A stretch of 64,000 nt of DNA, from the sequence record NC_070950.1. One strand, given 5' to 3'. Below are positions 8,730 to 15,945 of this stretch, piece after piece. The position numbers and the translations under genes were made by a program. Under the pieces are notes generated by a model. It was not told where the DNA came from and searched no databases. It saw only the letters and a list, made by a program, of their open reading frames with translations. Within the stretch, counting starts at the first letter, position 1. Every line of letters begins with the position of its first letter.

Positions 8730-9323
8730 ATGATGATGATCAACTGCTTAGAACCTAACGAATTCGTTCAGTTTAAAGAACAGTGGGATAAATATCTCGA
8801 GGAGGGTCTTCCCGGACTCGATGAAAGAATGAAGGGTCCGATGCTGATCCTGAACGCAATACCTGGGGTAGCGACCCGCTTTTGTTGTTCCGGTCATACC
8901 TTTGAAGAAAGGTTATCATCCCACCCGACCAAAGCGTATTCTCGAGTGCAGAAAAGGAACTTCATTTTTGTCGTTGAAGAAGGTCATGCCGATATTTTCT
9001 TTGCGTTTGAGATACTCTTCAAATTATTGAACAAAGACGAGTTTAGTTTTTGCCGGCCTTCTTTAGAAACCACTCTGCTCAAGAAAAACTTTGGTGAGTC
9101 GGAAACCTATCCGGTTTGGGTATTCGAAATGAATTGGGTTTACGAACTCACCGAGGAAGAAAAAATAAAGGGAAGGGATAAGACCCAGAAAGAACTTTGG
9201 GAGAAACTCCTCAGAGGACTGTTCATGATCACCGATCCAAAGGAACGCCATAAACACCGGGATATTCTGACCGAACCCTATTTCGACCAACCAGGACTTA
9301 TTAGGAAAACACATAATGTTTGA
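8730..9323 (+). CDS. hypothetical protein with a TYW3-like motif
   Basis: GLDERM...LNAIPGVATRFCCSGH resembles the Tyw3 iD..i..lN...T.SSCSGR motif. Confidence 0.45.
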   Translation: MMMINCLEPNEFVQFKEQWDKYLEEGLPGLDERMKGPMLILNAIPGVATRFCCSGHTFEERLSSHPTKAYSRVQKRNFIFVVEEGHADIFFAFEILFKLLNKDEFSFCRPSLETTLLKKNFGESETYPVWVFEMNWVYELTEEEKIKGRDKTQKELWEKLLRGLFMITDPKERHKHRDILTEPYFDQPGLIRKTHNV

Positions 9324-10425
9324 TATCGGCATCGTCGTTGGTAAATTTGCCCCTCTCACCCAGGGGCACATCAACCTCATCACCCAAGCCTCCCTCCAGG
9401 CTAAGAAAGTTATCGTTGTGTTAAGTCATGACAGTCGCTGGTTAGCGCAACAATGTCCTCGTGATCAGAAGGCGTTGACGTTCACTAACCGTCTTCGTTG
9501 GTTACAGCAGCATTACGCCGATTCTGACCACATTGATATTAAATATATCATCGAAGATGACATCCCGGAATTCCCCAACGGATGGAGCGCTTACTGTAAC
9601 CTCCTCAGGAAGATCTACACTGAGGAACAGCACAAGAACTATAAAGGAATCGGATCAGTCGACAACACTCGTCGGATTGCTCAAACCGTGGCCATTTTCA
9701 GTAGTGAAATCGATTACGATAAAGGTTACGAGGAGCATCTTCCTGAAGTCAGTCACGTCGTCGTTGATGCGCATCGTACAGCGGTTCCCATTAGTGCGAC
9801 TAAAATTCGTGAGAATCTTTACGCCAACTGGGAATACCTCCCTTCTATTGTTCGTAAGGACTACACCAAACGGATTGTCATCCTCGGCCAGGAATCTTGC
9901 GGTAAAAGCGTCATGGTCAAGAATCTGGCTAAGATGTTTAATACGTCCTGGGTAGAGGAGTACGGTCGGACGTATTGTGAAACTGAGCTCTGTGGTTCAG
10001 AATCGACACTCCGTAGTGATGATTACCCGATCATCGCTTATCGCCATAAGGAACTGGAAATCCAAGCAATGCGTTCGGCTAACCGCATTTGCATCGTGGA
10101 TACGAACGCATTCATTACCGAGTACTACCATCGGTTGTATGAAGGCAAACCTAATCGTATCGTCTCTGCTATAGCAGCTGAGGAAAACTACGATCTGGTC
10201 ATCGTGCTCGAACCTACGGTGGAATGGGTTGATGACGGCCTTCGTAGTAATCCCGAAAGACAACGGACGACCGAATTATTTAACCTCATGAGTCTGGAGT
10301 TCCCTAACCAGTTCCCGGAAGGAAGAACGTTCCATATTTCTTCCCCTGATTACAAAGTTAGGTTCGACCAGGCTTACGAAATTATCAAAACCTTCACTCA
10401 GCGTGTTAACTCAGGTGAATTTTAA
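9316..10425 (+). CDS. nadR: NadR-like NMN adenylyltransferase / nicotinamide riboside kinase, without HTH
   Basis: VGKFAPLTQGH, ISATKIR, Walker A GQESCGKS, EEYGRTY, IVDTN, WVDDGLR. Confidence 0.92.
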   Translation: MFDIGIVVGKFAPLTQGHINLITQASLQAKKVIVVLSHDSRWLAQQCPRDQKALTFTNRLRWLQQHYADSDHIDIKYIIEDDIPEFPNGWSAYCNLLRKIYTEEQHKNYKGIGSVDNTRRIAQTVAIFSSEIDYDKGYEEHLPEVSHVVVDAHRTAVPISATKIRENLYANWEYLPSIVRKDYTKRIVILGQESCGKSVMVKNLAKMFNTSWVEEYGRTYCETELCGSESTLRSDDYPIIAYRHKELEIQAMRSANRICIVDTNAFITEYYHRLYEGKPNRIVSAIAAEENYDLVIVLEPTVEWVDDGLRSNPERQRTTELFNLMSLEFPNQFPEGRTFHISSPDYKVRFDQAYEIIKTFTQRVNSGEF

Positions 10426-11121
10426 ATGAAAGAACTTTTTAGCGTAATCTATACTGATTTCCAGAGCGGATGGAGTCGTAAGGAATGGCTGTGGTTAGTC
10501 GTAGCCGTCTCGGCTGTTGTAGTTGGGAGTATTTCCGCTTCGCCACTGGAATTCTGGGCGGGGATATTCAACGTCGTCTGCGTTATTCTTGTTGCTAAAG
10601 GCCGACTCTCCAATTACTATTGGGGGCTATTAGGGGTGGTTCTCTACGCGATCGTTTCCTACAAGCAACAACTCTACGGCAACATGGCGCTTAACGTCAT
10701 TTACTTCGGATTCCAATTCTGGGGTATTTACGAATGGCGTAAAACACTGCTGAATAAGACTGATGCTGGCGTTGACGTATCCGTTAGGCGATTGTCACTC
10801 CTTCAGTTCCTTCAGATGACGTTCGTTGTTTTGGCAGGGACCTTTGCAGTAAGCTTGTTCCTTCGTCATATCGGGGATAGTTCACCCGTATTAGATGCGT
10901 TTACGATGGTAGCGAGCTTAATCGCTATGGGCTTGATGGTTAAACAGTATTCCGAACAATGGTTACTCTGGATACTGGTCGATATCGCTTCTATTTACAT
11001 GTGGGTCATTCCTGCTTTAGACCAGCCTGGTTCTTGGTCCATGGTAGCAATGTGGACGGTCATCACCGGTAACGCGCTGTACGGCGCTTACATGTGGTTT
11101 GTTGTTAAGATAAATAAATAA
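10426..11121 (+). CDS. pnuC: PnuC nicotinamide riboside transporter
   Basis: Multi-TM; LVAKGRLSNYYWG, QFWGIYEW, LDAFT, EQWLLWILVD; abuts nadR. Confidence 0.92.
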   Translation: MKELFSVIYTDFQSGWSRKEWLWLVVAVSAVVVGSISASPLEFWAGIFNVVCVILVAKGRLSNYYWGLLGVVLYAIVSYKQQLYGNMALNVIYFGFQFWGIYEWRKTLLNKTDAGVDVSVRRLSLLQFLQMTFVVLAGTFAVSLFLRHIGDSSPVLDAFTMVASLIAMGLMVKQYSEQWLLWILVDIASIYMWVIPALDQPGSWSMVAMWTVITGNALYGAYMWFVVKINK

Positions 11122-12474: not shown

Positions 12475-12507
12475 TAACTCCTACTCCCGATAAGGGAGTA
12501 GGAGTTA
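12475..12507 (+). terminator. CTCCTAC/GTAGGAG-family hairpin
   Basis: 14-bp stem TAACTCCTACTCCC-gataa-GGGAGTAGGAGTTA. Confidence 0.75.
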
Positions 12508-12532
12508 TTACACATGTAAATAAAAACAGACC

Positions 12533-12574
12533 TTTATTATCTCTATGTGGAATAAACCATAATCTTTTTAGGAG
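12533..12574 (+). promoter_or_regulatory. early-promoter variant plus conserved leader
   Basis: cTTTATTAT, 14 nt, then AACCATAATCTTTTTAGGAG, which is identical to 34515..34534. Confidence 0.6.
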
Positions 12575-12582
12575 CATGTAAC

Positions 12583-12885
12583 GTGAACATCTATTTAGTT
12601 AAACCAATGGAATTTACTGGCGACGAAGATATCAACGGTATGGTCGTTGTAGCACCTGACACCAACACCGCCTTGCTGACCCACCCTCATATCGACGCAG
12701 ACGGCAATACCTTCGAATGGGAAGTCGAAACCAATTCTGAAGCCGGTAACTGGGTGGATGATGAGGGCCGAACTGACATCTTCCACGGTTGCGCTTGGCC
12801 GGCTCCTGATCGTTTACACTGTGTTCTGTTGGGCGTAGCCGCCGACGGGATGGAAGAAGGTATCGTGTTGGTCGATCGTGATTAA
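12583..12885 (+). CDS. acidic hypothetical protein, paralogue of 5972..6283
   Basis: GTG start after AGGAG; shared motif blocks. Confidence 0.75.
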   Translation: MNIYLVKPMEFTGDEDINGMVVVAPDTNTALLTHPHIDADGNTFEWEVETNSEAGNWVDDEGRTDIFHGCAWPAPDRLHCVLLGVAADGMEEGIVLVDRD

Positions 12886-12895
12886 GGGGTAACGC

Positions 12896-13414
12896 ATGAA
12901 AGTCGTTAGATTTGGGAACCTGACCGTTAATAAAGATAACAAGCTGGAGATAACACAGTTTAATTTTTCCAGTGAGTCCAACGGCGAACCCGTCACACCG
13001 GCTGGTATGGTGAAAGCTATTGTCAAATGGCTAAACAGTCATGTCGGGAACACCGATGGGATGTTCAACCCCATCAAAGACTTAAACGGAGTCCCGCTTA
13101 TCGCAGGAGTAAATATCCCAATTGATCAATCCAAGTTGGTTATGCCTAAAAGTGTGGCTTTAGCCGAACTGGATCCTCCTGTTTTTAGCACCAACGAATA
13201 TACGTTCCTGGAAGTAGAGGAACGCGTTTATCAGCTCATAGCGATGCAAATAGGAATAACGCTCACTACCGAAATGGGTGTCATTCCTGGCTCGGTTGAA
13301 CTGATTGATGTGGATGACTCTCGTCCACATCCCGACAATGTCGTAGGTTACTGCCTGACATTAGAAAATCCACCGCGGTATTTCTTGAAAGTTAAGAATA
13401 AAGGAGTTCGGTAA
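12896..13414 (+). CDS. hypothetical protein
   Basis: SD; TAATG coupling downstream. Confidence 0.75.
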   Translation: MKVVRFGNLTVNKDNKLEITQFNFSSESNGEPVTPAGMVKAIVKWLNSHVGNTDGMFNPIKDLNGVPLIAGVNIPIDQSKLVMPKSVALAELDPPVFSTNEYTFLEVEERVYQLIAMQIGITLTTEMGVIPGSVELIDVDDSRPHPDNVVGYCLTLENPPRYFLKVKNKGVR

Positions 13415-14199
13415 TGTTAGAGACCCAGCTTAAAGATCGCCTGACCATCCTGAACACTTTCGAATGGTTTACCTACTTCTGGAATAAATTCGAGGAAGGC
13501 ATGTATGATGTAAGGCGAACCATGCATAGCGCTTCGGTTGCGATTAATAACGGAGATTGCGCGGTAGCCGCTTTAGCGGTAAGTTCCGTTTTGAATCGTC
13601 GACTGGATGTTGACGTTGGAATGGCTCGCAATACTCTTCACGCCTGGGTCACTATCGGTAACGATATCTTCGATACCGAATACCCCACAGGACACGATAT
13701 ATCAAGTTTTAAATCTAAATGGGGCGATCGTATCAGTGAGGTGGTTTTAACACCTGAGACCCTCGTAGAAGAGTTTATGCCGTGCGATCTGGCAGGCGCT
13801 TATCTCGTAAAAGAATTCTGCGGGATAATGTGTGAACCGCATCCTAAAGAAATCGATTTTCTCCTGAATAATCCTACCGAATACGAATCACGGGAGGGCG
13901 TTCACAAAATCGAAAAGGCTATTGCGTTCGCAGTAGAGGAAACTCTGAAAGCTCGCCGGGCAGTAACCACCATCAAACACGAGTCTTACTTCACTGCTAA
14001 AGAAGCCACGATGGATCATGAACTCAAAGATCACGTCAGGGATATCTATTCCGGTATTCTGATCTGCGTACTGGTGGATAAGAACGATTACAAAGTGATC
14101 GGAGAGTCTTATCGCAAAGGACCAGAAACAGAACGCACACTACTGGCGAGATCAAGAGCCAAGTTTATCGCCCTGGATAAACTTAAAGACGTGGCGTGA
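13414..14199 (+). CDS. papain/transglutaminase-like Cys-His-Asp domain fused to a phage gp49 (PF13876)-like domain
   Basis: GDC49AVAAL, H76AWV, FD87TEYP. C-terminal IKHESYFTA...ILICVLVDKNDYKVIGES...LAR. Confidence 0.55.
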   Translation: MLETQLKDRLTILNTFEWFTYFWNKFEEGMYDVRRTMHSASVAINNGDCAVAALAVSSVLNRRLDVDVGMARNTLHAWVTIGNDIFDTEYPTGHDISSFKSKWGDRISEVVLTPETLVEEFMPCDLAGAYLVKEFCGIMCEPHPKEIDFLLNNPTEYESREGVHKIEKAIAFAVEETLKARRAVTTIKHESYFTAKEATMDHELKDHVRDIYSGILICVLVDKNDYKVIGESYRKGPETERTLLARSRAKFIALDKLKDVA

Positions 14200-14223
14200 T
14201 CATTCAATTTAGGAAATAAAATC

Positions 14224-15768
14224 ATGAACGAAGAAAATAAAATCGCGATCGTTTCTCATGGGGAGGTTGTTGAGTTTGATCCTAACAGTGCTGAGCATCG
14301 AAAGATTCTTGAGTCGGCAAATAGGAAACTTATAACGAACGAACTCTACCAGCGAGATTTAAAACGCTTTAAAGACCTGGTTTTGTTTTATCAAAGTGCG
14401 GTTAGCAAAGAAACCATCGATGATAAAATTGAGGAGTTCTTAAGGGCTACCGGGATAAGGTTGGACTATTCTGATCTGGCCATTTTTAACTATGGGTACC
14501 CGGACATAGATGGATACTTCGGTACTCTCTATAACCGCGCAATGGGGATTGAACCCCCTTCTGTGTCTGCTGATGAGAATCCGATAGTTGAACTGAAAGA
14601 AAATAGCTTAAAACCCCAACTCCCCTCAAGCCACACTGGCGGGGAATTATTGTACGATATTCTGCTTCGTAAATTTAACCGTTTCATGCAGAACATAACG
14701 ACCGAGCTTTTAATATTAGGGCGCGGAAGATCCTTAACAACGGAATGTCGGATTGAAACAAACATACTCAGAAAAATAGAGGGGTTTAATAAAGAAACGA
14801 ATCTGGGGCTGGATCGTGAGATCGTACAAAATTGCCCAATCGATGAAAATTTGCAAACTGGGTATTTTAATGTTCTTTTCGTAGGTCTAATTAAACGATC
14901 AGAAGAATTCAGAATGCAAACGATGCCTCTTTCAGAGAAAATAGGGTTTATCCAACCGAAATACGGTAAGGACGAGGGGGTTAAGGCGAATCCAAACATC
15001 CGTTTTTGGTACGATAAGTTTGGAGTGGGTCATGAGATACCTCCCAATAAACCCATGGAAGCAGGTAGTGTTAAACGGAATGAGGGTTGTGTTATGGCTT
15101 ATCAACCATACGGTAACGGGGGATCTGTTCCTTCTCCTGATCCCCGCGATGAAAGTGTAAGGAGTAAAGATACTGTTATTCAAAACAGCGTTTCAATTAG
15201 CCCCGGGAAAGTCAACATAGAGGTGCTTGAGGCAGCATGTCGGACAATGGCCGAAAGTATGAAAGTCATGCACCGCAAGCCCGTCTCTGATGAATTTCGC
15301 GATAAACTTTACGAGGCGCTGGCCGCCTTTTATCATCGACATCACTCTCTAGGAAATGCTTCAAGAGAGTTCCTGTACGGGGATGTTATTTGCATCGAAC
15401 GGTTTAAGCGCGAGTTTGGAATCGTTTTCTCCGCTAGGGACGTGGACGCTTTTCTTAATGGAGTTATGACTATCCCTGTGTTACTCGGCAAATACGTTAG
15501 AGAACGCCATCCCGGTGAAAAGAAAATCACAACTTACCCACAATACGCTTTAGCTCTAAACACATTAACCTCGTTATTGTGTTTGTTTCCCTCAAACGTA
15601 AGGACGAGAGAAGATATTGAACGTGCTAAAGCATTACACGTTCAATTCAATATTCGTTTTGACATTGATATGTCCGAAGAGGATTTTTTAGCGATTATCT
15701 ATCGTCATGGGACTCCCCGCCATTTTCTCAAAAAACACGCTACCACTGAAGCCACTAAAGGTGAATAA
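14224..15768 (+). CDS. large modular hypothetical protein with a repeated helical motif
   Basis: TTTAGGA leader; 514 aa; IE.F...(T/F)(G/N)(I/L) motif three times; Pro-rich linkers. Confidence 0.8.
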   Translation: MNEENKIAIVSHGEVVEFDPNSAEHRKILESANRKLITNELYQRDLKRFKDLVLFYQSAVSKETIDDKIEEFLRATGIRLDYSDLAIFNYGYPDIDGYFGTLYNRAMGIEPPSVSADENPIVELKENSLKPQLPSSHTGGELLYDILLRKFNRFMQNITTELLILGRGRSLTTECRIETNILRKIEGFNKETNLGLDREIVQNCPIDENLQTGYFNVLFVGLIKRSEEFRMQTMPLSEKIGFIQPKYGKDEGVKANPNIRFWYDKFGVGHEIPPNKPMEAGSVKRNEGCVMAYQPYGNGGSVPSPDPRDESVRSKDTVIQNSVSISPGKVNIEVLEAACRTMAESMKVMHRKPVSDEFRDKLYEALAAFYHRHHSLGNASREFLYGDVICIERFKREFGIVFSARDVDAFLNGVMTIPVLLGKYVRERHPGEKKITTYPQYALALNTLTSLLCLFPSNVRTREDIERAKALHVQFNIRFDIDMSEEDFLAIIYRHGTPRHFLKKHATTEATKGE

Positions 15769-15945
15769 ATGCAACCACTGATCAGCCTTAAAGAGTTAGC
15801 CAAACTCCTGGGTGTTTCCGTTAAAACCCTGAAAATTCGTATTAGCAAAGGTACTGTTCCCCAGCCTTTCGTTAGCGAGGGGAAAAATATGCGTTGGATG
15901 CGTTCTGACGTTGAACATCTCTTCTCTAAAGAAGAAGTCGTTTAA
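15769..15945 (+). CDS. AlpA/excisionase-like HTH protein, 58 aa, missing from the ORF track
   Basis: My translation: MQPLISLKELAKLLGVSVKTLKIRISKGTVPQPFVSEGKNMRWMRSDVEHLFSKEEVV. AAAGG SD; abuts the upstream stop. Confidence 0.85.
   Translation: MQPLISLKELAKLLGVSVKTLKIRISKGTVPQPFVSEGKNMRWMRSDVEHLFSKEEVV

Follow-up and report, generated by a model that had tools for sequence, protein, structure and literature searches.

Which function is served by CPT_Miami_165 (QPB09260.1), a 261-residue 'hypothetical protein' of Klebsiella phage Miami? The question is raised by a 64,000-nucleotide stretch of sequence record NC_070950.1, referred to here as the window, in which the gene occupies positions 13414..14199 on the + strand (record coordinates, MT701590.1 / NC_070950.1, equal window coordinates plus 124000). 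A first-pass annotation of this stretch had read the product as a Cys-His-Asp protease- or transglutaminase-like domain fused to a nucleotide-sponge domain of the gp49/Acb4 family, and had suggested that the second domain could serve as a sensor for the first. Sponges such as Acb4 are a main phage means of silencing immunity of the type of the cyclic-oligonucleotide-based antiphage signaling system (CBASS), and sponge-fused proteins have already yielded new anti-defense families (bioRxiv 10.1101/2025.07.12.664507). The two-domain architecture itself holds: an N-terminal domain with a conserved Cys-His-Asp set and weak matches to transglutaminase families is followed by a C-terminal domain whose nearest solved structure is Acb4. 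As to function, we regard it as an evenly balanced proposition that CPT_Miami_165 is a two-module counter-defense protein, in which a diverged Acb4/gp49-family domain is joined to an older, thiol-hydrolase-like domain of the family PHROG 6870.

An intact two-domain gene under purifying selection

The gene is real, as had been proposed. Its open reading frame (ORF) comprises 261 codons and a TGA without an internal stop, and its ATG, which overlaps by one base the TAA stop of the upstream ORF 12896..13414, lies 7 nt downstream of the Shine-Dalgarno sequence AAGGAG (13401..13406, +), read from the sequence and annotated as the ribosome-binding site in the Miami record. Miami, to whose record window positions 12500-15800 are 100% identical, is a chimallin-encoding jumbo phage of the genus Miamivirus with a genome of 253,383 bp; a published list of phages that encode chimallin and form a nucleus includes it as 'a distant relative of RAY' (bioRxiv 10.1101/2023.02.24.529968). 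Six Miami-like phages and three metagenome clusters carry the whole gene in intact form: the same 261-residue protein occurs in Miami, YC1, KPN8, BUCTxx100, VB_ZK_P1, and phiKp_32 at 92–100% identity, and clusters P0001–P0003 encode it at 83–95% identity. A shorter relative of 167 residues (P0004, 86% identity) comes from ENA contig NODE_4305 (L016), which has 1364 bases and about 1x coverage; the relative resembles the Miami gene only as far as residue 151–155 or so, nothing in the window matches the last 200 bases, and the short version is either natural or a product of faulty assembly.

The protein can be divided into three segments: the N-terminal domain (residues 1–183; 13414..13962, +), a member of PHROG 6870; a connecting helix and linker (residues 160–185; 13891..13968, +), defined by model and identity counts; and the C-terminal Acb4/gp49-like domain (residues 186–261; 13969..14196, +), defined by profile, tblastn, and model matches. 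Identity is highest in the C-terminal domain (92–100%), lower in the N-terminal domain (81–96%), and lowest in the connecting helix (58–77%). Pairwise codon comparison of four phages gave a ratio of nonsynonymous to synonymous substitution rates (dN/dS) of 0.06–0.13 for the N-terminal domain. Over residues 186–261, three phage pairs show 0 nonsynonymous against 3–7 synonymous differences, and the other three pairs have a dN/dS of about 0.10–0.12. Both modules are thus under strong purifying selection, and the presence of the same protein in several phages together with the low dN/dS shows that the fusion is no sequencing artifact and that both halves are selected.

The C-terminal domain and the Acb4/gp49 family

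SPO1 Acb4 belongs to PF13876, as the first-pass annotation had correctly suggested, and has 1,331 homologs (Chang et al., bioRxiv 10.1101/2024.12.30.630793). It is a 96-residue protein with three antiparallel strands flanked by helices, and its tetramer binds four molecules of 3'3'-cyclic GMP-AMP (3'3'-cGAMP) in pockets formed by the β3-α4 loop of one protomer and helices α4 and α5 of another (bioRxiv 10.1101/2024.12.30.630793). The Miami protein is missing from the family table of that study, which reports that some homologs carry 'additional extensions'.

The gp49-like pattern in residues about 186–256 of CPT_Miami_165 is real but weak, and three lines of evidence connect the domain to the family. 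First, tblastn of residues 170–261 against 50,697 phage records returned 141 weak non-self matches (E 0.1–10, mostly 28–35% identity), nearly all of those listed spanning query positions 16/18–88 in register. The matches that were fetched, eight in number, are all PF13876 proteins of 115–124 residues (E 1e-31 to 1e-37). Second, hhalign aligned the C-terminal domains of the Miami group with ten gp49 proteins over 73 columns at 94.6% probability (E 7e-8). With a hidden Markov model (HMM) built from these ten proteins, the domain reaches 25.6 bits, to be read with the caveat that the ten were picked for similarity to the query; 2000 shuffles had a mean of -0.4 and a maximum of 11.4. An HMM of 107 gp49 proteins, gathered using a gp49-dominated profile, gives 22.5 bits and, among 618 six-frame ORF pieces of the window, finds this ORF alone (E 4e-5; next best 0.65). 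The gp49 profile also reaches SPO1 Acb4 (PDB 9E4W) at E 1.7e-7. Third, a model of residues 170–261 on a 108-row alignment (mean predicted local distance difference test score, pLDDT, 80.8) was compared with the PDB by Foldseek. Its 13 best matches are all chains of 9E4W, at E 4e-3 to 7e-2, probability 0.99–1.00, and template modeling (TM) scores of 0.55–0.62 over 88–91 columns. [quoted passage not shown]

Other results weigh against the relationship. PF13876 matches the isolated domain at E 0.032 and 15.2 bits, below its gathering score of 27 and over profile positions 9–45 of 82, and matches the whole protein at E 0.22. HMMER against 1.84 billion representatives (E <= 0.001) found no relative of the domain beyond the Miami cluster, a word-based search with the domain alone found nothing, and NCBIfam gave nothing useful for CPT_Miami_165. 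Searches of the PDB sequences by phmmer, with the whole protein and with the domain, produced noise only (E >= 0.65) and missed 9E4W. Because gp49 sequences dominate the alignment behind the C-terminal model, its resemblance to Acb4 does not count as evidence separate from the sequence match. A model from Miami-type sequences only has a pLDDT of 35–71 over residues 186–261 and a different first strand; it likewise shows three strands and then a long helix.

Could the gp49-like pattern be due to chance or convergence, with residues 186–261 being an unrelated extension? A sub-threshold Pfam score covering half of the profile, empty HMMER and phmmer searches, and a Foldseek E of just 4e-3 from a model guided by the gp49 alignment would be compatible with this reading. 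We nevertheless judge it most improbable: the eight weak matches proved to be true PF13876 proteins with the whole domain in register, the hhalign probability is high, no shuffle reaches half of the real score, the ORF is the sole match among the window's pieces, and the top PDB matches are Acb4 chains without exception. Profile and model comparisons agree across methods, and the domain is best placed as a remote relative of PF13876. The likeness to gp49 that had been claimed therefore stands on the hhalign, HMM, and tblastn results, but as a weaker match than the claim implied. Separately, each of the four Miami-type sequences gave an NCBIfam match to MobB over residues 176–231 (window positions 13939-14106), with E 0.007 here and 0.0007 in a relative; at 16.5 bits against a cut-off of 76 it was taken as noise.

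How far has the domain diverged? It retains the strand and core motifs of the family: I187..E190-x-Y-F-T-A195, C218-V-L-V221, N224, V228-x-G-E-S232, P237-E238, R246, A249, A253, and K256. The N-terminal helix motif of the family is replaced by the linker helix, and the conserved C-terminal motif of gp49 proteins is absent. The first-pass annotation had noticed that the C-terminal part is diverged, and its observation can be made precise at the level of the helices and of the ligand contacts. Among the columns that are >= 90% conserved in the 107 gp49 proteins, 21 of the 48 that align are kept and 12 more have no counterpart. The helix that follows α4 in the family is missing, the protein stopping where SPO1 Acb4 reaches residue about 83 of 96. 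The residues through which SPO1 Acb4 contacts its ligand (K36, F48, E49, V56, Y57, F62, N63, I66, T70, and K81) were mapped through the profile alignment, in which the chain index of 9E4W equals the native number plus 1. Conservative counterparts exist for two residues only: the base-stacking aromatic F48, which corresponds to Tyr226, and I66, which corresponds to Leu244. The others are replaced: K36 by a glycine, E49 by Lys227, V56 by Arg234, Y57 by Lys235, F62 by Glu240, N63 by Arg241, T70 by Arg248, and K81 by Asp259 (with Lys258 adjacent). The missing columns, the lost helix, and the replaced contacts weigh against the two-module counter-defense reading. The replacements go with a gain in charge. 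The domain holds 14 Lys and Arg residues, where the 107 family members average 7.4 and none exceeds 11, and residues 233–261 (14110..14196, +), which the profile alignment to 9E4W equates with the β3-α4 loop and helix α4, hold 8 with a net charge of +4, against family means of 4.0 and -0.2.

These features make a serious rival of the idea that the gp49/Acb4-derived domain no longer binds a signal and instead acts as an oligomerization or dsRBD-like RNA-binding module that multimerizes or targets the thiol enzyme. The lost helix and replaced contact residues are what lends it weight, and the Arg/Lys excess would suit it. Acb4 itself is dsRBD-like in topology (bioRxiv 10.1101/2024.12.30.630793), dsRBD proteins occur among the weaker Foldseek matches, and the retained parts are the sheet-forming core motifs that make the Acb4 dimer interface. 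Three observations pull in the other direction. The remodeled loop and α4 segment does not vary between Miami-like phages even though synonymous changes occur, which indicates that it was changed and then fixed and is not decaying, and points to functional constraint beyond a merely structural role. A basic pocket is typical of nucleotide sponges (bioRxiv 10.1101/2025.07.12.664507). Finally, the contact positions vary within PF13876 as well, for example between SPO1 Acb4 and the enterobacterial gp49 proteins aligned, and eight of eight homologs chosen across the family bound 3'3'-cGAMP (bioRxiv 10.1101/2024.12.30.630793). On balance, we consider the scaffold or RNA-binding reading unlikely, though it has to be taken seriously; were it correct, the protein would still be a clean example of the re-use of a sponge fold. 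If instead the domain binds a signal, the Acb4 fold would tolerate the loss of its terminal helices and a recharged pocket, perhaps with a different ligand.

The N-terminal domain and its stand-alone relatives

Residues 12–176 match positions 10–170 of the PHROG 6870 profile (E 2.2e-27). PHROG 6870 is found only in jumbo phages, and the length of its profile, 174 positions, indicates a protein that normally stands alone. The triad residues that the first-pass annotation had named are located where it placed them, in G47-D48-C49, H76-A77-W78-V79, and F86-D87, the cysteine closing the motif N45-x-G47-D48-C49 (codons 13558-13560 for Cys49, 13639-13641 for His76, and 13672-13674 for Asp87). In an alignment of 34 N-terminal domain sequences with 19–35% identity to the query, each of the three residues is present in 32, and the same two sequences lose all three, as expected of residues that work together. 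This pair, the metagenomic proteins P0025 and P0030 (383 and 385 residues), has H/E/T and H/N/S at the triad columns and, by sequence, probably consists of non-catalytic derivatives. The near-invariant positions of the alignment are N45, G47, D48, C49, A53, H76, D87, G93, D125, and G128.

The AlphaFold model has a pLDDT above 90 over residues about 10–180 (91–98 in the core region); it has a helix spanning residues 160–183, and confidence drops beyond residue 180. The core strands comprise residues 68–72, 77–81, and 84–86. Cys49 is the first residue of helix 49–63, His76 sits at the entry to strand 77–81, and Asp87 follows directly after strand 84–86. A cysteine at the start of a helix with histidine and aspartate on the next strands is the layout of transglutaminase-like and papain-like thiol enzymes. 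The putative catalytic core, residues 45–90 (13546..13683, +), is delimited by conservation, by the model, and by family matches from two independent libraries that coincide on the same stretch: Pfam Transglut_core3 (PF13471; residues 32–90) and NCBIfam lasso_biosyn_B2 (NF033537; residues 31–88; E 0.14, 12.5 bits against a cut-off of 33). Both the triad spacing, C-x26-H-x10-D, and the surroundings of the histidine, H-A-W-V, agree with the region that these two models cover.

The case has its weaknesses. The Transglut_core3 match (E 0.005, 17.2 bits) lies below the gathering score of 26, and this model gives any match in just 2 of the 34 family members. Foldseek of the full model against the PDB has a best E of 1.4 and recovers no solved transglutaminase- or papain-like structure, which tells against the assignment; the N-terminal family profile finds nothing below E 0.5 among the PDB sequences, and tblastn of the catalytic core against plasmids, seeking annotated transglutaminase-like genes, found no match. 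In BFVD, the only homologs are uncharacterized proteins, from Serratia phage Moabite, G9I9X0, Klebsiella phage FBKp24, and Vibrio phage USC-1, the first three with a TM score (target) of 0.78–0.84. Pfam also matched YunG in 2 relatives and Phage_YunG-like in 4, at E >= 0.005, which is too little to build on.

It follows that the protease- or transglutaminase-like character claimed for this domain is supported by motif, spacing, secondary structure, and weak family matches, but not by any PDB match with a Foldseek E below 1. From the first three of these we infer a transglutaminase/papain fold, and the domain is a probable Cys-His-Asp thiol hydrolase with a transglutaminase-like core, which is not the same as a demonstrated member of that superfamily. 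Alternatively, the three residues could be structural or serve binding, with the domain acting, for example, as another sponge or as an inhibitor docked on a protein of the host, in a fusion of the sponge–sponge type. The published fusion partners of Acb4 are themselves sponges (bioRxiv 10.1101/2025.07.12.664507), and the sub-threshold family scores and lack of a solved hydrolase match agree with such a role. It would, however, leave the retention of the triad in very distant relatives, its exclusively joint loss, the enzyme-like placement of the three residues in a confident model, and the agreement with the Transglut_core3/lasso B2 region without an explanation, and we rate this alternative as very unlikely.

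Where does the fusion occur? The N-terminal domain forms a stand-alone gene of 166–179 residues in OBP_078, ACSA002_1130, pEaSNUABM37_00122, and RAY_117, and jumbo phages of Erwinia, Salmonella, and Pseudomonas give tblastn matches to it at 30–37% identity. Starting from a full-length profile, HMMER on the same 1.84 billion representatives found 29 non-self proteins, all of which match query positions <= 182 only; none of these distant relatives, including those of 233–507 residues, has an Acb4-like part. Twelve IMG/VR loci on contigs of 62–287 kb match residues <= 178 only. As far as the sequences go, the fusion is restricted to Miami-like phages, and the N-terminal domain stands alone in every other phage that carries it. 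An origin from adjacent genes was considered and rejected: a search within 3 kb of the stand-alone gene, in four phage records and the 12 IMG/VR loci, turned up no gp49-like ORF. The window holds no second copy of gp49 or of the N-terminal domain.

Downstream of the stand-alone gene, we observed a protein of about 204 residues with a DNA-ligase-like N-terminal NAD+-binding domain (PF22745). It is found in Salmonella phage SA002 (L002:3916-4527, one gene between; E 4e-29) and in Erwinia phage RAY (L005:4459-5073, two genes between; E 3e-3).

Locus, working model, and known systems

CPT_Miami_165 sits within a same-strand run of small genes, and the Miami record annotates a terminator at window positions 12478-12509 (record 136478-136509). 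A scan for sigma-70 promoters and terminators yielded fewer sites than in shuffles, its model not being applicable to chimallivirus promoters. The flanking genes, 12896-13414 (172 residues) and 14224-15768 (514 residues), both on the + strand, have no Pfam or PADLOC match; the 514-residue protein has a marginal PHROG match only (phrog_2775, E 0.041) and its 172-residue counterpart none. Both are conserved alongside CPT_Miami_165 in the loci fetched from VB_ZK_P1, phiKp_32, and KPN8. At 9316-11121 (+), 2.3 kb upstream and on the same strand, the NadR-like gene CPT_Miami_159 is directly followed by a gene for a PnuC nicotinamide-riboside/NMN transporter (Pfam NMN_transporter, E 2.5e-43; PHROG 1880), the two forming a phage-borne NAD+ salvage pair. 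As context only, this pair fits a host-interaction neighborhood and may be relevant to NAD+-depleting defenses. Further downstream, the 58-residue 'putative DNA-binding protein' CPT_Miami_167 (15769-15945, +) matches the PADLOC model mad1 (mads_1) at E 6e-7. PADLOC returned nothing else for CPT_Miami_165 and its neighbors, which speaks against the counter-defense reading.

The balanced reading stated at the outset would work as follows. In the Miamivirus lineage, a shortened and diverged Acb4/gp49 domain would have been added to the C-terminus of an older PHROG 6870 protein, and the product would act in the host cytoplasm as a counter-defense factor. By analogy with the Acb4 tetramer, the Acb4-like module would oligomerize, and in doing so would also gather several enzyme domains. 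It may bind a phosphate-rich, nucleotide-type immune signal; this ligand need not be that of SPO1 Acb4, because the pocket positions are replaced, mostly by Arg and Lys. The thiol-hydrolase module would act on an amide, isopeptide, or thioester bond in a protein or peptide.

How would the two modules relate to each other? The first-pass annotation had favored a ligand-gated enzyme, in which an immune second messenger bound by the Acb4-like sensor allosterically activates a Cys-His-Asp enzyme that attacks the defense. Both domains share one chain and are under purifying selection, the C-terminal domain is the most conserved part of the protein, and its pocket segment appears remodeled rather than decayed, as expected of a changed role. 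Against this, the enzyme-like domain stands alone in all other phages that carry it and so needs no sensor, the connecting helix varies more than any other segment and is better suited to be a spacer than an allosteric relay, and known Acb4 fusions consist of independent modules (bioRxiv 10.1101/2025.07.12.664507). Our literature searches found no sponge-fold sensor that controls an enzyme. Because the enzyme domain is sensor-free elsewhere, the connecting helix is so variable, and known fusions are modular, a gated switch is less likely than modules working side by side, and we regard it as quite improbable. By analogy with the Acb4-Tad2 and Acb4-Sequestin fusions, two modules placed side by side on one chain are the most likely arrangement.

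Under the two-module reading, the fusion draws attention to an enzyme-like family that is a conserved accessory gene of nucleus-forming jumbo phages. If fusion to a sponge is taken as a pointer to function, as in the published work, other chimalliviruses carry candidate counter-defense enzymes in their stand-alone PHROG 6870 proteins. A bolder version, which we consider distinctly unlikely, makes PHROG 6870 a new class of counter-defense enzyme with thiol peptidase, isopeptidase, or deamidase activity, which disables one of the proteins of a nucleotide-signaling defense and is coupled in Miamivirus to a remodeled, signal-binding oligomer of the Acb4 type. Such an enzyme would, for example, strip an activating conjugate from a cyclase or effector, or cleave it, and a single protein would then soak up the signal while also knocking out its source or target; alternatively, the signal would recruit or activate the protein. 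If the two-module reading is right, the fusion would nominate a Cys-His-Asp enzyme for a protein-directed form of counter-defense that the literature searched does not describe against nucleotide-signaling systems.

We lastly compare the protein with known systems, beginning with its N-terminal domain. The order and spacing of Cys...His-x-Trp...Asp, with a cysteine that opens a helix ahead of the His and Asp strands, resemble those of the Transglut_core3 and lasso B2 cysteine peptidases. Unlike transglutaminase-like peptidases, the domain scores below the cut-offs, matches no solved member, and has its core wrapped in long helices specific to the jumbo-phage family. True homologs of residues 1–183 are Pseudomonas phage OBP gp078, Erwinia phage RAY gp117, and Salmonella phage SA002 MGA_113, together with uncharacterized proteins of Serratia phage Moabite and Klebsiella phage FBKp24. 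The PHROG 6870 homologs share 30–35% identity and the same triad, but are stand-alone proteins of 160–195 residues without a gp49-like ORF within 3 kb.

Among chimalliviruses, a comparable system is phiKZ Tad1, a sponge for CBASS and Thoeris signals, which has an unrelated fold and family and no enzyme-like fusion. A 2026 review names Tad1 as the sole anti-defense protein so far described in jumbo phages (PMC13282480); CPT_Miami_165, if correctly read, would add a sponge-family member to the chimalliviruses.

The C-terminal domain resembles SPO1 Acb4 in being phage-encoded, in having 9E4W as the best solved-structure match of its model, and in motifs that run in register across the strands and helix α4. 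It differs from the stand-alone Acb4/gp49 proteins (96–130 residues) in being fused behind a 183-residue N-terminal domain, and from the family at large in lacking the first helix motif and the last helix, in the replacement of most contacts, and in being far more basic. Fusion as such is no novelty, and the earlier assumption that a sponge is normally small and stand-alone is out of date: Acb4-Tad2 fusions are frequent, and 91 instances join Acb4 to PF21825 (Sequestin) (bioRxiv 10.1101/2025.07.12.664507). One Acb4-Tad2 fusion blocks both CBASS and Thoeris with modules that act independently, and the fusion partners of sponges led to a new sponge/anti-defense family (bioRxiv 10.1101/2025.07.12.664507). 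Klebsiella phages Menlow and May encode proteins of about 240 residues with an N-terminal Acb4 and a long C-terminal extension (bioRxiv 10.1101/2024.12.30.630793, Supplementary table 3), a domain order opposite to that of the Miami protein. The earlier claim that the architecture is undescribed consequently fails for an Acb4 fusion as such and survives for an enzyme-like partner: sponge–sponge fusions are published, and our literature searches found neither a sponge–enzyme fusion nor a transglutaminase-like anti-defense protein, so the union of an Acb4-family domain with an enzyme-like domain is not described in the literature searched. Like the Acb4-Tad2 and Acb4-PF21825 proteins (e.g., those of Pasteurella phage Pm86 and Pseudomonas phage YH6), CPT_Miami_165 carries an Acb4-family domain and a second module on one polypeptide. 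The partners in those proteins are small sponge domains without catalytic motifs, whereas the Miami partner has 183 residues and a conserved Cys-His-Asp set, and the Acb4-like part of CPT_Miami_165, unlike theirs, is C-terminal and truncated.

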